Source of the DNA: Orbicella franksi
Taxonomy: Eukaryota
Length of the DNA stretch: 64,000 bases
Assembly (NCBI GenBank): GCA_964199315.1
Contig: OZ116709.1
Location: 22,940,001 to 23,004,000 of the forward strand
Reading direction: 5' to 3'
Below, one piece after another: positions 17,001 through 39,300 of this stretch; positions within the stretch are counted from its first letter, which is position 1, and the number at the start of each line of letters is the position of its first letter. The translations under genes were made by a program, and so were the position numbers. The notes under the pieces are model-generated. The model ran no database searches and was not told the DNA's origin. It was given only the letters and a program-made list of their open reading frames with translations.

Positions 17001-19201
17001 GATATATTGCGTACGTAATTTCTCCAATCTTGGTTAGGATTGTTGGGTATAGTTTGTTAACATTTAACTGGAAAAAATAGCAAAACCACACGCTGAACAA
17101 TTACATGCTCACAAATGATCATTTTTTGAGTTTCTGATCCAAGAAAAAATAATTCTCTCTTTCCGTTATCGTCAGTTATTGCAATCAGGAGCTCCGCTTT
17201 TAGGCTTGGCTAAATCTATATATTAAAGATTTTCACGAAAGTAGAGCAAGAAAGCATCTCCACCTTGCTAAGTCAGCAATCAAAGAAATCTTCAAGTTGT
17301 AAAAAGCTTCACTTGTTATTTTAGACAAACAAGTCCTTTCTGATCAGGGTTGTCATTAAGTTTTGAGTCGCATGTAGCCTTATTCTCAACACTAGTAAAA
17401 CACTTGTTACTTGGTGGGTGAATTCTATCAACAGGTAATTTCACCTGTTGCATCAAGGGCCCAAGCATACTCAGCCAGAACAAGCATTATGGGTTATGGC
17501 CCTTGATGACAGCCCTAGTGATGGTGTTCAACAGGGCAAGTAAGTTTTTTAAATTTTCTCTTACAGAGCAGCCTGTTAAGTTAAGATAATTATTTTCACT
17601 TGAAAAATATACTCATCTTACCAGGTAAGAGTTTCTTCCAGGATTTTATGAGTGACTTGGCTTGGGTTTGCAGGTCTGAATTTTCACTTTTCTTTCTCAG
17701 AGTGTTGACAGACATACCTATTCTTGTTTTCTGCAGTACTTCCAGAGTAATGGGAAGATCTTTAAGCATTTTTAAAAGATCCACTGCACTGTCAGAATCC
17801 ATCTGGAGAGATCAACACAATGGAGACAACAAAAATGTGAAACCTGTTCCTAGAGTATAGGTTCCTTATCAGTGCCATTCTTACTCATCTGCATAGGATG
17901 CCAGAAACATGAAAAAAAAAATTATTTCAGTTTTGCGAATGTTTTGTGCCTCAACAGAACTCAAGACCAACTTTTAACCATACTAACCCAGTGACAAATG
18001 ACAACTTTTTTTCACTAACCAAGAAAATATTTTTACCGTACCAACCAGAATGGTCAAAAGTTCAACAAATGCTGATACAAGATTCAAAAAGTTTGGTTTT
18101 TCAGAAACATACCTGAACACTCTGCCAATTTGGTATCATCAACAAACGTCATTTACATGCTTGAAAATTGAAGAGATAATAGCAGTTTGACCGAGTAACA
18201 CAAATCAGTGCTAATAAATGAAAACTCAAAAGAAAAAAAAAAAAAAAAAGCTCAACATATGACTTCTCATTGTTCTTTCATTTACACAGTGATCAAGTTG
18301 TACTTTCTCCTAAGAAATAAACACATTCTCAGGAAAGAAGAATACAAAGTACAATGTACAAATAAACATCTGATTAATAAACCTGGTTGCCACAGGCCTC
18401 ACTTTTCAAAAATTCACTGACTTTTTCCTGACTTTTCCGTGATAAAAATAAATACAAAATGTCAGATCTAGTGGTGGCTTCTGGCCTCAGCTTACAGATG
18501 TCCTTTTTTCCCATTCACGAAGACTCGTAAGTTTTCAAAAAAATTTTCCTTCTTCATTGAGGAAAAATATCAATGAGATCACAGTGACCCCAAATGTTTC
18601 TTCCAGCCCTCAATGACGTTACATTAGCCATGTTAAATTATTTCAATTTTCCCTGACTTTTCTTCAAAATGTCAATTTAACTCGAAGTAAAATTCCCTGA
18701 CTTTCCCCTGACCTTGAAGAATGTTTTACCCCTAAGCATTTTCTCACCTGTGGCAACCCTGGAGTTAATTTCAAAAGAAATTCAGGGCAATCAGTGAGCC
18801 AGGTAAGCTTAATAGCTAACATTAACTTGGAAATAAACGCTTCATTTCGTTTTAGCGTTTTGCGTGCAAAGAAATCGAAGGTCAGTATATACTCAGCTGG
18901 AAGATCCATATGTTTACCTTCTGGAGAAAAGTTATTATATTTGTACAAACTCACACTGAAACATATATACTCTTGGAGTAAACTACCTCGGGAACTTTCT
19001 TGTAACAGTTTTGCGGGAAATACATAAGTTCAAGTGCATGTACGGAGCTAGTGAATGGGCCTTTTGTAATGTTTATTCCGGTGATACCGGCCGGCAAATT
19101 GAATGACACTCGACAACAAATGCTCGACTCACCGCTCCTTCTTGGCCGACTATCTTTTCCAGCTGCTTGCCAATCTTGAAAACTTCTTCCTCGAGATTCA
19201 T
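10793..19201 (-). CDS. TCEA1: Transcription elongation factor TFIIS (TCEA), ~302 aa
   Basis: Exons (minus) 19201-19133, 17802-17622, 14911-14675 (or alternative donor 14690), 14027-13989, 13656-13502, 12580-12362 and 10801-10793. Domain [10 protein letters not shown]; domain [21 protein letters not shown]; zinc ribbon CGKC...[25 protein letters not shown]|FC-stop with the catalytic DE. Confidence 0.97.
11026..11130 (+). repeat. Compound trinucleotide microsatellite (AAT)n/(AAC)n/(GAT)n preceded by a C12 run
   Basis: Seen directly in the last TFIIS intron; it accounts for the poly-Ile/poly-Tyr ORFs in the track. Confidence 0.95.
13657..13988 (-). other. U12-type (minor spliceosome) GT-AG intron in TFIIS
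   Basis: 5' splice site GTATCCTTT; branch site TTCCTTGAT with the branch A ~14 nt upstream of an AAG 3' splice site; no long polypyrimidine tract; the reading frame across it (ACEE|CIFQQF) is intact. Confidence 0.92.
18382..18761. mobile_element. Non-autonomous TIR element (CAGGGTTGCCAC termini, hAT-like) in TFIIS intron 1
   Basis: cctggttgccacagg ... cctgtggcaaccctg (2 mismatches); internal ccctgacttt repeats; no TSD recognised. Confidence 0.6.
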
Positions 19202-27093: not shown

Positions 27094-30000
27094 ATGCTGG
27101 CAGGTGTAAGGTATCAAGTGGACAGCGGATGGGCCTGGGTTGTGTGTTTTGCTTCTTTCTTTGTTCAGTGTGTTGTATTTGGCACTATACAGTCGTTTGG
27201 GACGCTTTTTATTTCATTGCTCAATGATTTTAAATCTGGAGAATCTGCGACAGGTAAGCTTTGAGTTTTATTACAGATCACTTTAGGCGTGATTGATATT
27301 ATGATTTATCACCGAAAAGATTTGAAGGAGTTTCTGTTCTTGACTCGAAGTTGTCCATTATTAATTTGAATTTTCGTAATTTACTACTTTTCTTTTCCTC
27401 CTATCGTATAAGTACTTTTCACGAACCAACTTTCATATTAGAATCATGTGAACCTTTTGATGGCGAACGGTAACGTACATGGCGAACGTAAGGGTTCGTG
27501 GAAAAGAACGCCGTCTTATGTCCTCAAAAGCATTAACACTTGTCTTCGGTATCGTCTGTGTTAAACGAGTATTATCCAATTTTTTTTATCTGTATACAGC
27601 ATGGGTTGGCTCGTTGGGTTATGGGTTTCTCTTCGTCATTGGACCCGTCACAACAGCCTTGTGCGAACACTTTGGATGCCGTGTTATGGCATGCGCGGGC
27701 AGCGTACTGACCACCGTCTCTTTGCTTGTGACGTCGTTCGCGCCCAGTATCGCCAGCATGTACTTCACGTTCGGAGTGCTTTGGGGGACTGGAGGAAGTT
27801 TCTTGTTCTTCTCCGGTCTGCTCATCTTGAGGTTTTACTTCAACAGAAACATTTCTCTCGCTAACGGTATCACTATGACTGGGGCCGGATTTGGAACGCT
27901 TGTCTTCAATGTCATGCTGCAGGAATTCGACGAGAAGTACGGTTGGCGCGGAGGAATGCGCGTTTTAAGCGTATTTTCCGCGTTGACGTTCTTGTGTGGC
28001 TGCGCGTACATTCCACCACCAGTTGATTACTTAGCCTTCGAAAGACCGAGCGTCTGGTTTCGGCTGAAGAGGCTCATAGATCCACGCCCGTGGAGAGAGC
28101 GAGCGTTTACGATGTGGGTGTTGTCAATGTCGTTCATTCTCTTCGCGTACTTCTTTCCTTATACATATCTGGTGAGCAAAATTCCGGCTAGTTCAATTAA
28201 TGTGGTCAAACGTCTATCACGTGACTTCATGAAAACTATAAGATATTGTCATACCTGTACAGAGAAAACAATTTAAAATCGAAATGGGTTGCAACGTGCT
28301 ACAACTACTAAATCGTCATCTCGGTCGTTTGCTAATTAACTAATGATGTGTGCGACAGAATTTATAACAAAAACAACGGAGACGGAACACTCGAGAAGAT
28401 ATTTTTCATATTTAGTATTCACGTATAATCAGATGTTTCAGAAGCAAAACTACTCTAAGATTAATAATCACATTAACAGGATCGCACTACAAGAAGAAGT
28501 TATACTTAAGGATTTAAATCATATCTCCAAAAAAAGTGGTAAATGGTTTCTAGCCACTTGGGTTTTGGGTTACAAAACTGGGTTACAAAAATAATCTAGG
28601 AGTGCTAGTCGTGGAACCAGATTTACGAAAGCCTTTTAAATTAAGATGTCTCGAATACGAAAGACTTGTTAAAAAAAATGCTTAGGATGCATCTTAACTT
28701 AAGAGAGCTTCGTTAATTAAGCTCCAACTGATCTCTGCTGATAATACCAATTGTATTGATACTAATAACTGAGTGTTATCTGTAAATCTATTGTAGGTCC
28801 GCATGGCTGTAACACTGGGTATCCCCGTCTCCCAAGGGGCTCTTTTGCTTGGGTACCTTTCAGTGTCAGCCATATTTGGTAAACTCCTGTGTGGAAGATT
28901 GGCGGATCTCCCACGCGTCAGGCGTTTGTACATTTTCGTTCTCTCAGCAGTCATTTTAAGCCTGTCTTCTATGTGTGTCACCGCTGCCAAAAGTTATCAC
29001 GGCCTGCTGGCTTACACATTAGTAGCTGGATTTTTTGACGGTTGTTTCGTGGTGACAGTTCCACTTATCACGCAGGATATTGTTGGCAAAGATCTCATGG
29101 CTAAGGCAATCGGGAACTTGTACGGAGTGGTGGCCTTTCCTTTGACTTTGGGACCTCCTGTCTTAGGTAAAGCTTATTTCTTTACTTTTTTTTTGCTTTA
29201 TTACAGAAGTAGGAACAAAATTAAAACCTGGTCCCTTAACCATATCAACAAAGCCAATGTAACCAAAAAGGGCATTCAAAAATTAGAAAAAAAAATTACC
29301 TTTAATCATCAAATTTACATTTTTAGCGTTTATGGATCGTTGTCAAGGGAATAACCCTAGGAGACTTATATGTCCGCGACTTGATTGCCCTTTCCTTCAG
29401 GGTTTCCATTTTCTAGTCAGTTAGTCGTAATTAAGTTTAGTTATTCTGTTTTGTTCTGTCCAAAGGTGAACTATACAAAACCACCAATTCCTTCACCACC
29501 GCTTTCTTTGTCTCCTCTTGTTTTATTCTCGTCGGTGTGAGCATTATCTACATCGTTCAAAGGATTCGTCCAGACCTGGTTAGCAAGCGAGAGCCCACCA
29601 GACAGGAAGTGTATGATTCTTCTCTGGTGCCTACTCCCAGCATACATTCTGCAAGCGTGGTGGATACATTGAGTGGTATGTTTGTCACAGAGCCGGGACT
29701 GTCTGCTACTCGCTTAGATCCAATGGAAATAGGTTCGTACCAACGATTCGATACTTTTCGCCGAGAGGAACCAAGAGCAACTTTTCTAGAGCCTGTCCAT
29801 GGGCGAATGGCAAATCCAACAGAGATAGAGGCAGTGTACAGACAAGCTGTTGACAATTTATCAAACATTAGTGGCGTTACAGGTCATCACCGCAATGCAT
29901 CGGACACCAGTGGCAATTCTAAAGTTAACGTTCCTACTCAATCTCGCTCAGCAAGTATGTTCAGTGGTTCAATGGCGTCATTTCCCGAAATGCCGACAGT

Positions 30001-33000
30001 TAATGTCGATTCTTCTTCGGGTTTACAAATTCCTTCCGGAGAAACCATGGATTTACCAAAGGCAAGCGAATCATGTACCACCCTGGTGGATCCAAATATT
30101 GGAGCGTCGCCTCACGGCGTAGATGAGGGTGGGATTAACATATCTGGTGATGGCATGATCCTGCAGGGAGGCGAGCAGCAGGAAAAAGTGTCTGTGACGA
30201 GCGATCAGTATCCAACCGCCAGTAGCCCAACTCTTGACATACAGACTGCTATGGAAGCAAAGGAAATCGAGCACGCTGATACAGAATTTTCTGATTTATT
30301 CACAAAGCCTCAACCGTCACAAGTGGCAGAAGAAAATAAGACTTCACCAGGGCCAATGATTGTTGACAACAGGGATATAGAACTCGAGATACAATTAGTT
30401 AAACTTCTCCCTCCTCCAGAAATTCATCGCAAAAGGAGAGCCGATCCTCTAGATACTGTATCAAATGACCAAAGTGACATTGCCAGTATCTCAAGCACAG
30501 ATGGCCTTGGAGATGATGTCACACTGAAAACAGAGAAAAAAGACCCTGATGCAGGAACGATTCAAGATAGCGAACAAAGCGTGAGGACTCCTATAATTGA
30601 GACAATATCGCTGGAGAACGAGGGAAGTGTAGAAAATGAATCTGTAAATGGTCTGCTCGAACTTGTTCGTATTCCACCCCCACCCAGCGTTCCACGCACA
30701 GGGCAGTTAGTGGCTTTGGAAAGTGAAGCAAATAAGGATGGGGAAAATTCTTTCCTTTCCGAGGTAAAATCGGACGCCGAGCAGGATAACCAGTATGACA
30801 AAGAAGCAGCCGCCGATGATAATTCTTCTTGCAGAGCCGTTTCAACCACTCAACGGAAAGAAAGATTACATCTTGCTATTATTGACCAACTTAATCTGTT
30901 GAGTGAAAGACTTGAAGCTGTTGCCGCTCGCCAGATTCAGGAAGAAGAGGAACACAGGGATAATGACCAACCAGATCAACGTCCCCCATTCTCACCAGCA
31001 CTCCAGAGTTTACCTTTAACGCCTCTTTATTCTGCAAATCACAGTGTACCACTTACACCCGCTTGTGCATGGTCAAGTTGTCTCAACACCCCAGCACCTA
31101 CTCCACACCAAACGCCTCCAAGTGCGTTTCTGACAACAGCACCGACTCCCATCCACATTCCGCACACACCAGCCCCAGGTGTGTCTGGAATCTGCACTCC
31201 AAGCGACGTGTCTATGGCGAACCTTTCACGCTCAAATGTTTATGAGACAGGACAGGTGAATACTAACGATTCTAATAAATGGAACGATGTAATGGACGGT
31301 TGCAGCCCTTCGCCCTCACAGGAAACTGACAACCAACAACGGAGCAGATGTTCCTCTTTCTCAGAGGTAGGACAAGAATTTGTTGTCAACGAATGGAGTG
31401 TAAGAGATCTGCGTGGATCCACAGAGGCATTCTCTCCAAAACAGTCAAGCGGAGCCAGTTCTTCAGTTTCGAATAGCGCCAGATCAATAGGTGACTTAAA
31501 CAGCGTGAGTGAACCAATTGATATTGTGGAATTCACGATTAATGAAAGCCACGGAGGACATATGAACTCTCCAGAAAATTATAGTCCCAGTCAGCAGGCG
31601 GAGGCCTCAGTTGATATGTGTCTACCGCAAAAGCCATGTTTAAATTATGAAAACACAGACGTTTACAGGCAAAATCCGCTTCAACAGTCACACCTGAATT
31701 CCAATTTAACAGAAGTAAAAACGAACCAAATGAACGACTCATGCAAAGTGGAAACTTTAAATATTACCCAACAGTTGGCTGAAGAAGTGCCTCAAGAAGA
31801 GCTTTCCAATAGTGAAATGCCTCTGGAAGTGCATACTTGCCAGCAATTGTTTAACACGACAGATTCAAAGGAAAACGAACTAGAGATGGTAGGTCTAACC
31901 GTGCAAAAACCAGACACAATTAGCAATAACTATCAACCCGAATCTGCAAGTATTCTCTTACCAGAGGTTATTTCTAACGCTTCTACTACTTCCGAGCCCC
32001 AACAAAAGATAGAATACAGACCAGATTCAAGAGACATCCAGCGAGAAACCAGGTTTGGTCCAAGCCCACTGGGCTCAGAATTAAACTCATTTTTGGTATC
32101 AGACCAAAAAGAGCTTACGGGATTTTCCCAGTGCAACCCATTTCAACAGCCATCGAAAAGATTGCCAGATGAATCGCAAAATCCATTCGAAATTCCTGGT
32201 GGATTAGATTCACATGATGAACATCCTCAGTCGTATCAGTCAAAGGGATTAACCACAGAGAAAGAACAGTGCATAACCGAACAAACGGAAGCGTTCTTAT
32301 CGGAGAGTAGGTCTTTCACCCAGGTCTCGCCAAACGTGAATTCATCACCTCAAGCAAGTGACTCGCATTTTGAGCCCTATTGTGCTGAAAATTTGATTGA
32401 CCAACAAGTTGTTCTTCAGCGAAATAATTTCACGGATAAGAACTTTCATAGACTCCCAGAAGAGTCTGACACTGGTATTACGGAACAGACATTCACCACT
32501 TCTGACAATCCCAAGCTGGAAACAGATCAAGAAGTCAGTACACGAAGCCAATGGACAATTTTTTCGCAAAGCGAGGAGGGTTTAATTTTTGAGATGGATA
32601 CAGAAAGTGAATCATCTTCGGATAGTAGTGCAAAACTTGAAAGCAACTCTGCATGTGCGTCAAGGGAACCAAAGACTGACGAGAAGGATCATTGTGCTGC
32701 AGATCAGGAGAGTCTGTTCCCTCCACTACAGATCTTTTCTGACGTGGCCGACATGATCACTAAGATGAATGGTCAGGGTATTCCTGTCACACTTCCTCCT
32801 CCGCCCAAACAAGTCCATCGTAAGCGAGCAGACCCGTCCGTTTCTGTCACCGCAGAAATATCTCTCCCTTATGAGACTGGTGGTAAGGACAGTGAATCAA
32901 GACAGAAATCTGTGGTAGACAAACAGACTGTCGAGAAAATAGTTCTAGAGCCTGTTTCCATGATAGATCACGAACACCTTGGAACCCTGAAACTAAAGCA

Positions 33001-33463
33001 AAGTGGGAGTACTGAAACACATCATGTGCCCAGTGATGAAGATTTGTCAGCGACTGGCAATTCTCTCAGCGAGATTGAATCAGATTTGATATCTGAATCT
33101 AAGCTTGACGAGCTTCCAGATAAACTGAGGGACAATTCAATATGTGGAATTGTCTGTCAAGAATTGGAATCAATTAATGATGAGGACGAGATGTTCGCAA
33201 GCGAAAAAGCCGATGACTCAAATATAGATGGAGAAATGGTAAAGACTTCGATCCACGATGATATTGCGCCACTTTTGGCACAAAACAGTGAGCCCATCCA
33301 ATACGTAAATCTTGGAGATCTTCCCGAGAATTGCCTTGTTCTCCACAAACGCCCCTCGTCTGCCTCATCAACAGATGATTCTAGCACTTCCACAGATTCT
33401 AGCCTGTCAGAAAACGAAATGCCTTACAGTAAATTGCACGAGGATACACCAGCCGAAGGATAA
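27094..33463 (+). CDS. SLC16A10-like: Monocarboxylate/aromatic amino acid transporter (SLC16, MCT8/MCT10-like) with ~1300-aa C-terminal tail, 1699 aa
   Basis: Exons 27094-27253, 27600-28171, 28797-29166 and 29466-33463 (phases 1, 0, 1; 5100 nt). SLC16 TM1 signature DSGWAWVV, AWVGSL, GCRVMAC, GKLLCGRLAD, PLTLGPPV. The last exon continues in frame into the 1308-codon ORF. Confidence 0.88.
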
Positions 33464-34813
33464 TGACAACAGTCAGTCTTTAAACGTGATCGTTGAAAGA
33501 TGATTACAACAGAGTAGAAAAAGGCTTAGCGATGGCGCAAGTGGAACAGGCCTGACAAAAATACAATTAAAAACGTCACGGCGTGCAGCCGTGACTTGTT
33601 AACAGTTTGAAATAAATCCATTAGTAAAAGAAAAGTGGTTTTAATCCCTTGATTATGTTTTACCCTGACTGTCTCAGCGGTTTTCGTGCTTCGTTTGCCT
33701 AGTGACGCGAAACAAAATCATAATCAATAATTGCGAAATAGAAAGGAAATCAAACGTCAGGAGTAAGGGTGGCACTCTGACTAGATTATTCCAACCTGGA
33801 ATTCGTGGAGGTATACGGGAATCTTTGTTTAAAATATTTGCCTCATTAGCGTAAGCGATACAGTTACTAATCAGTCTAATCAAATCCGTTTTTAAATAAT
33901 CGACCCTGGTCAGCTGGCGTTTATATTCAAATTCTAGCTACTTCTTAAAGATCTGCAAAGCGTGTTCCAGTTTAAACCACTGCAAGTCACGTGATGTCCT
34001 CTTTAGGTTAGCACGTGGCGTAGATCGTCACGAAATGTCTTTTCGGGTTTCCGTGAGGTGTAACGAGATGAAACTTAATGACTACTGATTATGTCAAAGA
34101 AGCATCAACCAACAGGCTGGGTATCTACATTTCCAAGTGATTTATTTCCTGCCCAATTCCCTGCAATTGCCGAAATATTCGATTCCTGGGCTCACAAGTG
34201 CATTAATATTATAAAAGATTGTAAATGCAATATAAGATTAAGTCCAGCTATACGTTTCACGGAAACAATAAGGTGATTTTATCTAGAAACTTAAAATAGC
34301 TTCTATATTCCCAGCTTCTTTGAAGCGCGCAGTTACGTTGTTTCACACTCTTACGCAATTCAAACTATTACAAAAAATTAAATATTAAATTACTCAGGTA
34401 ATAATAACAAATAACAAATAATTTGCCTGCAAATAATTTTAAAGCTAAATATTCGATGATACGATGTATAAAAAGCCACTTGATTTAGTGCATAATTCCA
34501 AAAAATTGTCTGTTAACTTGGTTCCCCTCCCCCCTCCGACTACCCTCTGTCGAAAAACAGTCGTTTGCAACTTCTCTTTCTAAAGTTGTCAAAATAATTT
34601 CTCCTGTCTGAGGTAAATGAAGTGAAGGTTTTCAGGAGCGCATTAAGCAAGTGTGATGAAAAGCAATTAATCATAAGAATACTTCCAAGAAACTTTGTTC
34701 TCTACCTGGGCAATGACAGTGTCAGCTAGAAAATGTATCTATTTATTGTATTTGTTAGTGCAATTATCCAGCCATTTTAATTAACTGAAGTGGCAGTGAT
34801 ATCGATTAACGAA

Positions 34814-36332: not shown

Positions 36333-39300
36333 TCATAAAATTGTTTCTTGACAAAGTTCCAAGTTGTAGTCAAGTTCTGCCTGAGATAAAAGTGTTGTTA
36401 TTTGTATTTTTCCATCAGTAGTTATGTCTTTTCCACTGCTTGTGTTATCAATAATTGAAGCTGGACGACTAGTCACATCGTGTTCCAATGAATTTTCAAA
36501 CATTACGCTAAACATGTCCATAGAACTAGCGTACCATCCTCCCTTTACAAGCTTCTCTTGTTGAACAACTACTTCAAGATCGTCAAAGCTCAAAGCCGGT
36601 GTTACTATGGTTACAGAACCAAGCTTGTTTTCCTCTGACGTATCCACGATTTCGCTAGACTGCGAAGAAGGGCTCTGTCTATTGGAATCGCTTTCATAAC
36701 CCGATGATTCATTCAACGAATCAGTGCAGTGCAACTGGGCAGCGGCTGACCATGCGCGAAACATTGCCGACTTCATTAAAGTTGACGTACCACTTCGGTT
36801 TAGCATTTCCATGGAAACGCTACGCTGTAACACGTGGTCGCAGTGCGCAGCCCGCGCAAAGAAAGCAGCTTCGGTGGGAAAGCTGTAAATCGTTCGTGAA
36901 GCTCTCTCGTAATTCGTTGATTTTTTCGTCAATTTATCAGTCTCGTTCAGAAGCATAACCTTTTCTTGACATAGTTCTGTTTTTGTCGGCATCAGCCACG
37001 GCACTAGAAACAGAAGACATACCCCACATGTCATGACAGCTCCAGAAAGGTAAAATGCTATGTCGTATTTTCCGAACACATCGAAGATGAAGCCTGTGGA
37101 AAATGAAATTGAAATCTGTGATCATTACTTCATTCCTTATAACAATACAACAACGCATTGTCAATGTGAAATCTGACTCTCAAACAAAGCAAATCATCGA
37201 CTACCGCAAACATTAAAAGACGCCAGTGGGGCGGAAAGAGGAGAGACCGAGGGAACGAGGTTAAGATATCCGCTAGCCTTCTTATGACTTGTCTCGCGCT
37301 CTTCCCCAACGAAAGGTTGCGTGACGAGCCCAAAGAAGGGAAAATATTCGCTTGATCAGATTTTTCTGAGCTTCCATGATGATTGACGTTGCGTGAAAAA
37401 CCTTCCGAGAGATTTAACTATTTGCGTATCAAAACTACACGTCGATAGAGAAGTCTGCAACCAAAAGTTTCCACTTTTTATTAGGATGTCACTAAACAGA
37501 AACACTTTCTATAAACAACCTACTCAGACTACTCATATAAAATCTAACAGCGCGAGACGCGAGTCCACGGATAGAGATGGTTCTGATCTCCTGGTAAGAA
37601 GCTCCTGACATCATTCAAATTATACCAACCTGCCACAGGTGGCCCCAGGACATTTCCAATGGCCGCTGCGAAACAAAGATTTCCAAAGGCACGCCCTACG
37701 AGCTTCTCCCCGACAATGTAAAGAGTTCCCATCCCAAACATGACAGCTAAGCATCCATCGAAAAGTCCAAACACAACAACATACACAACTAAAGACAAAT
37801 AACTCCGAGCTAGAGGAAACAGTGTCGCGTTGACAGCCAAAACAAGACCAATGATTTGAACAGATGCAACTCTGTCTATTCGTGGACTATTTCCAAGCCT
37901 TCCGAACGCTATTCGGGCAGCTGTTTGCGTGAAGGCCTGGTAACCAATGAGTAAAGCACTTTTGGAGCTGGGTATACCAATGTCGTTTGCTATGCTTATC
38001 TGTTGAAACATAAGAGATACTCTTTAGTTCCCACAAATTAAAACCAGGGAGGGAAATTTTATTTTAGAATACTCTCTCCTCTTGCAGCGAAGATAATCAC
38101 TAGTGGTATTAGACTAAATGATAACACGTTATTTTTAACAAGAGGTAACATGGAATAAATTTACCAAATTATTTGAATTGTAGCTGATGTAACCAGTCCA
38201 ACTGATCCAACTCTAGTCTTTGCCCCGAGGGATTATTTTCGGCTTCTCGCTTCATAAAAAGCAACATTGCAACAACGTTGCACGCTTCTCAAACTCACCA
38301 TATACTGTAAACAAAGCAAGTCATGACCGTGACGGTGTCTGGAAATCTGATCTTAATTAACATAGATTTTTACGATTATATTTCTCCGTTCTCTCCTCAG
38401 ATTTAGTTTCGATTGAGAAGATATATCAAACACTCAAGACAATGTTTGACCACATTGCCACACACCTCGAAGTTTGTCAAAAATACTCCGATGCGCGACG
38501 TATTTTCAACTCTCTTCGCAGTGTTTGGAAAACAAACTGAACATACTTACCAAAAAGACGAAAGGTATAAAATTGCCAAACGCGATGAAACTCAAGGAAA
38601 TGGCCCACACCGCAAAGGCCTTATTTTTCCAAGGATTTAAACTGAGAAATTCCAACAAACGTAATTTAATCTTGTAAAGAATGCCAATATCTAAACTTCT
38701 ACGTCTGTCCTTCTTTTGCAGCTGAACACGTTGTTCCTGCTTATCCTCAAGTCTGCTGTAGCTCAAACTCGAAACACACATTAACAATGACATTCCAGCG
38801 AGAATTCGCATCGTTATCCTCCAATCATAATGAGCAATAAGTTGATTGATGGCCCACGTCATCGGCGGAACACCCAATCCAGCTCCAGCGATGGCAATTC
38901 CGTAAGCCAATGATAAATAGTTTCTGAAATGCGACGGTAAAATTACTAGAGAGGCGAAGTAACAGAAACTCGTCCCAGCTCCCCAGAGGAGCCCATAGGT
39001 AATGTACAACAGAGTAAAATTGGTGACGAATGACGTAGTTAGAAGACCCACAAATGACAGAATGCCTCCAAGGCACGTGACTACCCGGCATCCTAATTGC
39101 TCGCAGAGGACCGTGGTTAAGGGGCCCATGAAAAACATAACACCGAACGCCAGCGAGCCCACCCATGCTAGAAATAATAACAATAATAAATCATAATTAA
39201 ATAAAGCTGCCCGTGATTGCATCTCAAAAAGAACAAAAATCCTTCCCGGCTTCATTATTTATGGCTTTGACAGGAACTTATTAGAGTGACAGCCCGCCTT

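Follow-up and report, generated by a model that had tools for sequence, protein, structure and literature searches.

We examined a 64,000-nt stretch of the Orbicella franksi genome (assembly GCA_964199315.1, contig OZ116709.1, positions 22,940,001 to 23,004,000, forward strand; the whole stretch is hereafter the window, and positions are given in its coordinates) and the transporter gene that lies at 27094-33463. The locus holds one protein-coding gene, and the coral belongs to the robust clade of stony corals. Four exons on the + strand are spliced into a coding sequence of 5,100 nt, which encodes 1,699 aa and has one stop codon, the terminal one; all introns of the gene have GT/AG borders. 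The parts of the gene are as follows (TM, transmembrane helix).

27094..27253, + strand: exon 1, start codon and TM1, with in-frame stops upstream of the ATG
27600..28171, + strand: exon 2, TM2 to TM7 with a short TM6-7 loop (Pfam MFS_1, E 1.2e-11; MCT10/MCT8 chain alignment)
28797..29166, + strand: exon 3, TM8 to TM11 (Pfam MFS_1, E 3.6e-9; alignment to 9gsz/9hhq/9fkn)
29466..33463, + strand: exon 4, TM12 (to ~29560), followed directly by a tail of ~1,294 aa and the stop
33611..33616, + strand: AATAAA, a likely polyadenylation signal ~150 nt past the stop

The last hydrophobic peak of the protein (TM12) lies at aa 385-392, early in exon 4, and the open reading frame (ORF) 29537-33463 on the + strand spans 1,308 aa. 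The RefSeq model XP_078362006.1 of Oculina patagonica (1,701 aa) agrees with the coral gene model at the N-terminus and at all three junctions, and the acceptor AG of exon 4 (29464-29465) is kept in the ortholog contig L001. This Logan contig was considered as a transcript and ruled out, because it retains the intron upstream of the tail exon and is therefore genomic. The transporter gene is single-copy in its own genome. A preliminary description of this DNA had proposed an SLC16 core with a long tail encoded by one exon, and the intact spliced coding sequence, with TM12 and tail in one frame, upholds that proposal. Two of its details needed adjustment: the core occupies aa 1-405, so that the tail begins at ~aa 406 and not at ~aa 400, and the 4-kb frame is intact but the DNA is merely mildly AT-rich (42-45% GC). 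The long ORF is not a separate gene, since TM12 and tail share one exon and frame in every lineage seen and NCBI models join both.

The core is a 12-helix SLC16 transporter that aligned end to end with the MCT10, MCT8, MCT2 and MCT1 chains. Pfam MFS_1 was found in exons 2 and 3, and hydrophobic peaks extend up to aa 392. The PDB matches of the core were MCT10 (2e-55) and MCT8 (2.5e-52), whereas MCT1/2 reached only 1e-26 to 1e-30. In MCT8 and MCT10 the F-x-x-Y of TM7 and the Asp of TM10 gate transport, and the TM7 Tyr/TM10 Asp pair is exclusive to these two carriers (PMC12078798). The coral core carries this pair: TM7 reads 'FFPYTYL' opposite 'FVPYVHL', FFPY (exon 2) being the equivalent of MCT8 F336/Y339, and TM10 reads 'GFFDGCF' (exon 3) opposite 'GLFDGCF'. 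Two other diagnostic residues are replaced. The carboxylate-binding Arg of TM8 (MCT8 R371/MCT10 R343) is Lys in all coral orthologs seen ('FGKLLCGRLAD'), and the Asn of TM1 that pairs with the TM7 Tyr to close the gate (MCT8 N119/MCT10 N89) is Gln ('FGTIQSFG' vs 'FGIQNACG'), a conservative amide change located in exon 1. Given the Arg to Lys exchange, in which the charge is kept, we named the protein MCT8/10-like and not an ortholog with proven equal substrate. The residues of the proton-coupled MCT1-4 are not present (MCT1 K38 in TM1 is Gln and D309 in TM8 is Ala). By its residues and PDB matches the core is an SLC16 carrier of the MCT8/MCT10 (aromatic amino acid/iodothyronine) subtype, not of the lactate/H+ type, which narrows the amino-acid/monocarboxylate carrier of the preliminary description. 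Most likely it would be a facilitative carrier of aromatic amino-acid-like substrates, not coupled to protons. The human MCT10 (SLC16A10/TAT1) and MCT8 (SLC16A2) structures (9gsz, 9hhq, 8zkn, 9fkn) are like the coral core, but their chains end ~10-50 residues past the last aligned core position, whereas the coral protein continues for ~1,294.

The tail (aa 406-1699) is rich in S (13.2%), E (9.5%), P (7.6%), D (7.1%) and T (7.0%). It is acidic, with 211 D+E against 92 K+R and a net charge of ~-119 that is spread evenly along its length. The probability that 1,332 codons stay free of stops by chance is ~1e-33 at the base composition of the exon, and the other five frames of exon 4 contain 40-101 stops. 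No TM-like segment follows TM12 in the tail (maximum KD19 = 0.87), no Pfam domain was found in the tail, and Tandem Repeats Finder detected no tandem repeats in exon 4.

A word-indexed search gave 38 tail homologs. When a profile of tail residues 385-1331 was compared with 1.84 billion representatives, just 15 proteins were found, all of the same coral family. Both main clades of stony corals (Oculina, Stylophora, Acropora, Montipora) have the tail, as do three further homologs, P0038, P0039 and P0040. Full-length models with core and tail exist for Acropora palmata (1,822 aa), A. muricata (1,766 aa) and A. cervicornis (1,804 aa, 'MCT10'), and further models with both parts for Montipora foliosa and M. 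capricornis (1,780 aa) and Stylophora pistillata (1,559 aa, partial, 'MCT10'). TM12 and tail share one exon in at least 19 lineages, and in every genomic ortholog they form one open frame behind a common acceptor, with MFS_1 exons upstream. A maximum-likelihood tail tree resolved a Robusta clade (Oculina, Stylophora and the window gene) and a Complexa clade (Acropora, Montipora) with support of 97/99 and 99/99; P0038, P0039 and P0040 form long branches outside both and their placement in this tree is uncertain. These three also start with TM12. P0038 aligns along the whole tail, and P0039 and P0040 keep, in order, ISGLDTLSGM, Y-x-R-F, IKLPPPP, RLPPPPxxPRTGTLV, SQRLEAVAARQ, SANHS[VI]PLTP, D-x-x-P-LL and the terminal STDTS[LI]SENEMP. 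As a separate observation, one Acropora palmata model (P0061, XP_074636922.1) has ~60 extra residues (~373-432) exactly at the exon 3/exon 4 junction; they resemble translated intron and may reflect another splice choice or an intron retained in the model.

Selection was estimated by NG86 from a single pair, the window gene and its ortholog L002 (~85% amino-acid identity), as the ratio of nonsynonymous to synonymous substitution rates (dN/dS).

Introns: nucleotide identity 86-88%
Core exons: nucleotide identity 95-97%, dN/dS 0.09, dS 0.14
Tail: nucleotide identity 91.6%, dN/dS 0.41, dS 0.17

All nine tail indels between the two genes are multiples of three, and dN/dS falls to 0.04-0.10 in some 60-codon windows of the tail. 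An alignment of 16 tails contains 12 islands with a total of 182 residues at a column conservation of at least 80%, in fixed order. Judging from these substitution patterns, the tail is under relaxed purifying selection. The selection on the frame that the preliminary description had argued for is borne out by the tail dN/dS, the in-frame indels and the conserved islands; its alternative of unconserved neutral sequence is not, as orthologous tails were found across corals. We concluded that the locus is almost certainly a real gene carrying a conserved, selected tail.

AlphaFold2, given the 16-sequence alignment, returned a mean predicted local distance difference test score (pLDDT) of 35 for tail residues 385-1331 of the exon-4 protein, with values below 50 in 881 of 947 residues. 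The tail is predicted to be almost wholly disordered, as had been proposed from its composition, and only one of its elements was predicted with confidence:

30845..30952, + strand: amphipathic helix QRKERLHLAIIDQLNLLSERLEAVAARQIQEEEE, aa 828-863, 36 residues, pLDDT 87-92 (model residues 76-111)

The helix has a column conservation of 0.93 and a dN/dS of 0.04 (codons 841-900), and its homodimer prediction scored 0.04, which speaks neither for nor against a dimer. A model of the Oculina core with the proximal tail had a mean pLDDT of 32, was low even in the MFS core (shallow alignment of seven sequences) and was set aside. The combination of conserved islands, a fast-evolving background and a stable length is the signature of a functional disordered region. 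The even spread of charge would also suit a tail that is mostly spacer, that is, an acidic 'entropic bristle', tether or condensate-former in which length and charge matter and few islands are specific; lineages whose tails are only 35-85% identical still agree in tail length (~1,250-1,400 aa), and large tail parts have a dN/dS of 0.5 to >1. We consider this account unlikely, as the island residues have been held in fixed order over deep coral divergence and specific motifs are kept even in the most distant homologs.

Polyadenylated (polyA) RNA lends thin support to transcription of the tail exon. In the polyA library of run X6, contigs of 190-384 nt cover 18 of 20 exon-4 bins versus 0 of 4 flanking intron/intergenic bins (Fisher P 0.0014); 13 of the 34 placed contigs are at least 99% alike. 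Their cover reaches 33525, ending near the AATAAA at 33611, and shows no joint inside exon 4. The raw polyA runs X21 and X23 had zero depth on the gene, which may reflect low expression, or another species, because the reads are only 90-95% alike. A run labelled metatranscriptomic (X1) was also considered; its 8.1-kb contig, placed on window 28750-34079, is colinear with the genome through intron 3, so that it represents DNA or unspliced RNA and was discarded as expression evidence. These data bear on whether the long frame is made as one protein at all, or whether early polyadenylation or splicing within exon 4 leaves an ordinary short-tailed carrier, an outcome that the preliminary description had named as fatal to its claim. 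Such an outcome would fit the internal AATAAA at 31274, the zero depth of the raw polyA reads, and the lack of a full-length core-plus-tail transcript or protein among the assembled RNA data. It is nevertheless very unlikely: the X6 contigs tile the exon to 33525 free of joints, several NCBI models span the whole exon, every lineage has an unbroken frame, with in-frame indels only and dN/dS <1 to the C-terminus, and the C-terminus is among the most conserved parts of the tail.

Two further observations were made past the likely polyadenylation site. PolyA reads and contigs (X23, X6) cover window 34123-34700 at a depth of 3-9.5 and could represent an unannotated transcript, a longer 3' untranslated region or repeat-derived RNA. 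A short dispersed repeat at 33812-33865, ~350 nt past the stop, had very high depth in four runs (summed contig depth up to ~1,300), and many reads at this repeat run on into unrelated sequence on both sides.

The conserved blocks of the tail are listed below; counts out of 16 give presence among the 16 aligned tail sequences, and Φ is used as in the motif names.

29642..29758, + strand: juxtamembrane blocks IHSASVVDTLSGMFVTE and SYQRFD (YxxΦ site, 16/16), also in P0039 and P0040
30401..30451, + strand: first proline/basic block KL(L/P)PPPE..HRKRR, in ~12/16 sequences
30659..30715, + strand: invariant ELVRIPPPPxxPRTGQLVA (16/16), also in P0039 and P0040
30983..31156, + strand: conserved Ser/Thr-Pro cluster (aa 874-931) with two invariant PLTP sites (31013-31024 and 31049-31060)
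32135..32188, + strand: two NPF motifs (32135-32143 and 32180-32188)
32552..32608, + strand: invariant WTxF (WxxF 16/16), then LIFEMDTES and an acidic serine run
32714..32827, + strand: invariant LFPPLQIFSD, then proline/basic LPPPPKQxHRKR
33260..33436, + strand: C-terminal block with DIAPLL (acidic dileucine, 16/16), YVNL, the STDDSSTSTDSSLSENE acidic serine cluster (C-terminal serine cluster, aa 1663-1691) and PYSKL (YxxΦ, 16/16); the distant homologs P0039 and P0040 share D-x-x-P-LL and this serine cluster

Endocytic accessory proteins bind EH domains and the AP-2 appendages through NPF, DP[FW] and WxxF motifs in long disordered stretches. The classic signals for sorting by adaptors are [DE]xxxLL and YxxΦ, and ERK-type kinases prefer PX[ST]P sites. 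NPF occurs in 1-4 copies per ortholog versus 0.10-0.24 expected, an enrichment of ~10-fold (shuffle P <= 0.013 in seven of eight lineages tested). The eighth lineage, P0039, has no NPF but DPF and DPW (P 0.01), and P0040 also has DPW; NPF or DP[FW] is enriched in 8/8 lineages tested. The positions of these motifs drift between species while their number is kept. With several NPF or DP[FW] and WxxF motifs kept across species in a long disordered region, the tail has the make-up of an endocytic-adaptor-like array. Other motifs are invariant in position in 16/16 sequences, namely WTxF, DIAPLL ([DE]xxxLL), PYSKL, SYQRF, IPPPP and a basic RKR patch; LPPPP is present in 15/16 and Y[VL]NL in 13/16. 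As candidate phosphorylation sites there are 13 conserved Ser/Thr-Pro sites, eight of which, including both invariant PLTP, fall within residues 509-564 of the exon-4 protein. Acidic serine runs end the LIFEMDTESESSS block and the C-terminus. PPxY, PTAP, YPxL, NPxY, FFAT, RVxF, 14-3-3, TRAF, SxIP, PxIxIT and strict LIR motifs are not conserved among the tails.

With middling confidence, we read the tail as a motif array for sorting, endocytosis and phospho-regulation. Because standard MFS topology puts both termini inside, the tail would be cytosolic, and it would act through a series of short linear motifs, not through a folded domain. NPF (or DPF/DPW), WxxF, the acidic dileucine and YxxΦ would engage EH-domain proteins and AP/clathrin adaptors, and this engagement would set the location of the carrier and its rate of internalisation and recycling. 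Proline-recognition domains would dock on the [ILV]PPPP blocks, and kinases would control the system through the PLTP/Ser-Thr-Pro cluster and the acidic serine runs; the one conserved helix probably serves to bind a partner. The preliminary description had suggested that the tail is a scaffold coupling flux to signalling or trafficking, and the motif content of the conserved islands would fit the trafficking part of that suggestion.

Several observations weigh against the motif-array reading. The assignment of motifs to partners (EH, AP-2, kinases) follows textbook motif classes. The counts of YxxΦ and [DE]xxxL[LI] are not enriched, and only their fixed positions argue for function; WTxF departs from the strict WxxFx[DE] form, and IPPPP is not of the strict EVH1 class. 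Some 85% of the tail residues fall outside the conserved islands, and several tail stretches, e.g. codons 1201-1320, have a dN/dS of ~1 or above. No single transcript spanning core and tail and no read bridging exon 3 and exon 4 were found in the RNA data examined, to which the zero depth of X21 and X23 is added. On the side of the core, the TM8 Lys and TM1 Gln are shared by all coral orthologs, and the substrate may differ from that of MCT8 and MCT10.

The same blocks may be read in terms of signalling. The yeast glucose sensors Snf3 and Rgt2 have an MFS core that no longer transports and a long partner-recruiting cytosolic C-terminal tail of ~200-340 aa. By analogy, the coral tail might gather kinases and adaptors and report the substrate occupancy of the core, with no role in trafficking; a transceptor had also been put forward in the preliminary description. 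The invariant PLTP sites stand ~50 residues after the basic-Φ-x-Φ stretch RKERLHL, which resembles the layout of a MAPK docking site and its phospho-acceptors, and the pYxN-like YVNL, proline blocks and acidic serine clusters are present as well. However, RKERLHL is part of the predicted helix, an unusual setting for a docking motif, and the best-supported enriched motif, NPF or DP[FW], is of the endocytic and not the signalling class. The core retains the MCT8/10 gating residues and, at a dN/dS of 0.09, looks like a working carrier with no sign of decay, unlike that of Snf3/Rgt2; the coral tail is four to six times longer than theirs and has no homology to them. We found nothing in direct support of a transceptor role, and we give the signalling account a modest chance of being right. 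The RKRR and HRKR patches, two conserved basic stretches beside the PPPP blocks (RKR in 16/16), could also point to a tail that is cleaved off and acts elsewhere, e.g. in the nucleus. This is extremely unlikely, considering that the patches are short, Pfam is empty for the tail, and no protease site, DNA-binding domain or activation domain was found.

The motif-array reading has counterparts among known endocytic proteins. Epsin, Eps15, AP180, synaptojanin, stonin and Dab2 (textbook) likewise contain long disordered regions that are acidic or Ser/Pro-rich and bear several NPF, DP[FW] or WxxF-type motifs along with adaptor-binding signals. In these soluble adaptors, folded domains that bind lipid or cargo lie at the N-terminus, whereas the coral 'head' is a membrane transporter, and the profile search against 1.84 billion representatives gave no sequence homology between the coral tail and endocytic accessory proteins. 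A more specific form of the reading is a cargo-adaptor hybrid, in which the tail, switched at the PLTP cluster by proline-directed kinases, would recruit EH-domain/AP-2 machinery. In corals and related anthozoans it would thereby link the flux of aromatic amino acids (or iodotyrosine-like substrates) to the remodelling of membranes, perhaps at compartments derived from phagosomes, e.g. the symbiosome. We regard this form as speculative and quite unlikely. The link to host-symbiont exchange and the symbiosome drawn in the preliminary description found nothing in its support, and no data on expression or localisation were found in the literature.

A second transporter gene lies downstream of the long-tailed gene, in tail-to-tail orientation:

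36333-39255, - strand: convergent SLC16-like paralog, with MFS_1 in the ORF pieces 39255-38506, 38011-37544 and 37079-36333

It has a like exon plan, and its last exon also encodes TM12 and a tail, but that tail is only ~215 aa and shows no homology to the long tail (BLASTP E 1.4). The paralog keeps the TM8 Arg, unlike the long-tailed gene with its Lys. The tail-to-tail pairing recurs in the deep ortholog locus L004, where MFS_1 is found at 17105-19087 on the minus strand.

Among proteins of at least 935 aa, such a core was found in the coral family and in one beetle model with several MFS domains only, so that the unusual tail length claimed for an SLC16 member stands with nothing comparable besides that model. 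In MCT8 the extension is at the N-terminus (PEST region). No published work on this gene or its tail was found in the literature; the protein is in the databases but unstudied, labelled 'uncharacterized' or 'MCT10' only, and its odd build could be overlooked or split by gene predictors. The SLC16 family and sorting motifs in disordered tails are already known, and it is the combination and the scale that are new.

SLC16 carriers are usually studied as compact 12-helix proteins with short tails, and the coral protein contrasts with this picture across both stony-coral clades and beyond. If the hybrid form of the reading were true, it would define a transporter class with a built-in endocytic scaffold that arose once, early in the lineage. 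The gene offers a natural case for the roles of long disordered tails in transporters, be it in sorting, turnover or signalling, and the tail motifs are discrete and individually mutable. In corals, it is a single-copy candidate for regulated transport of the amino-acid type.

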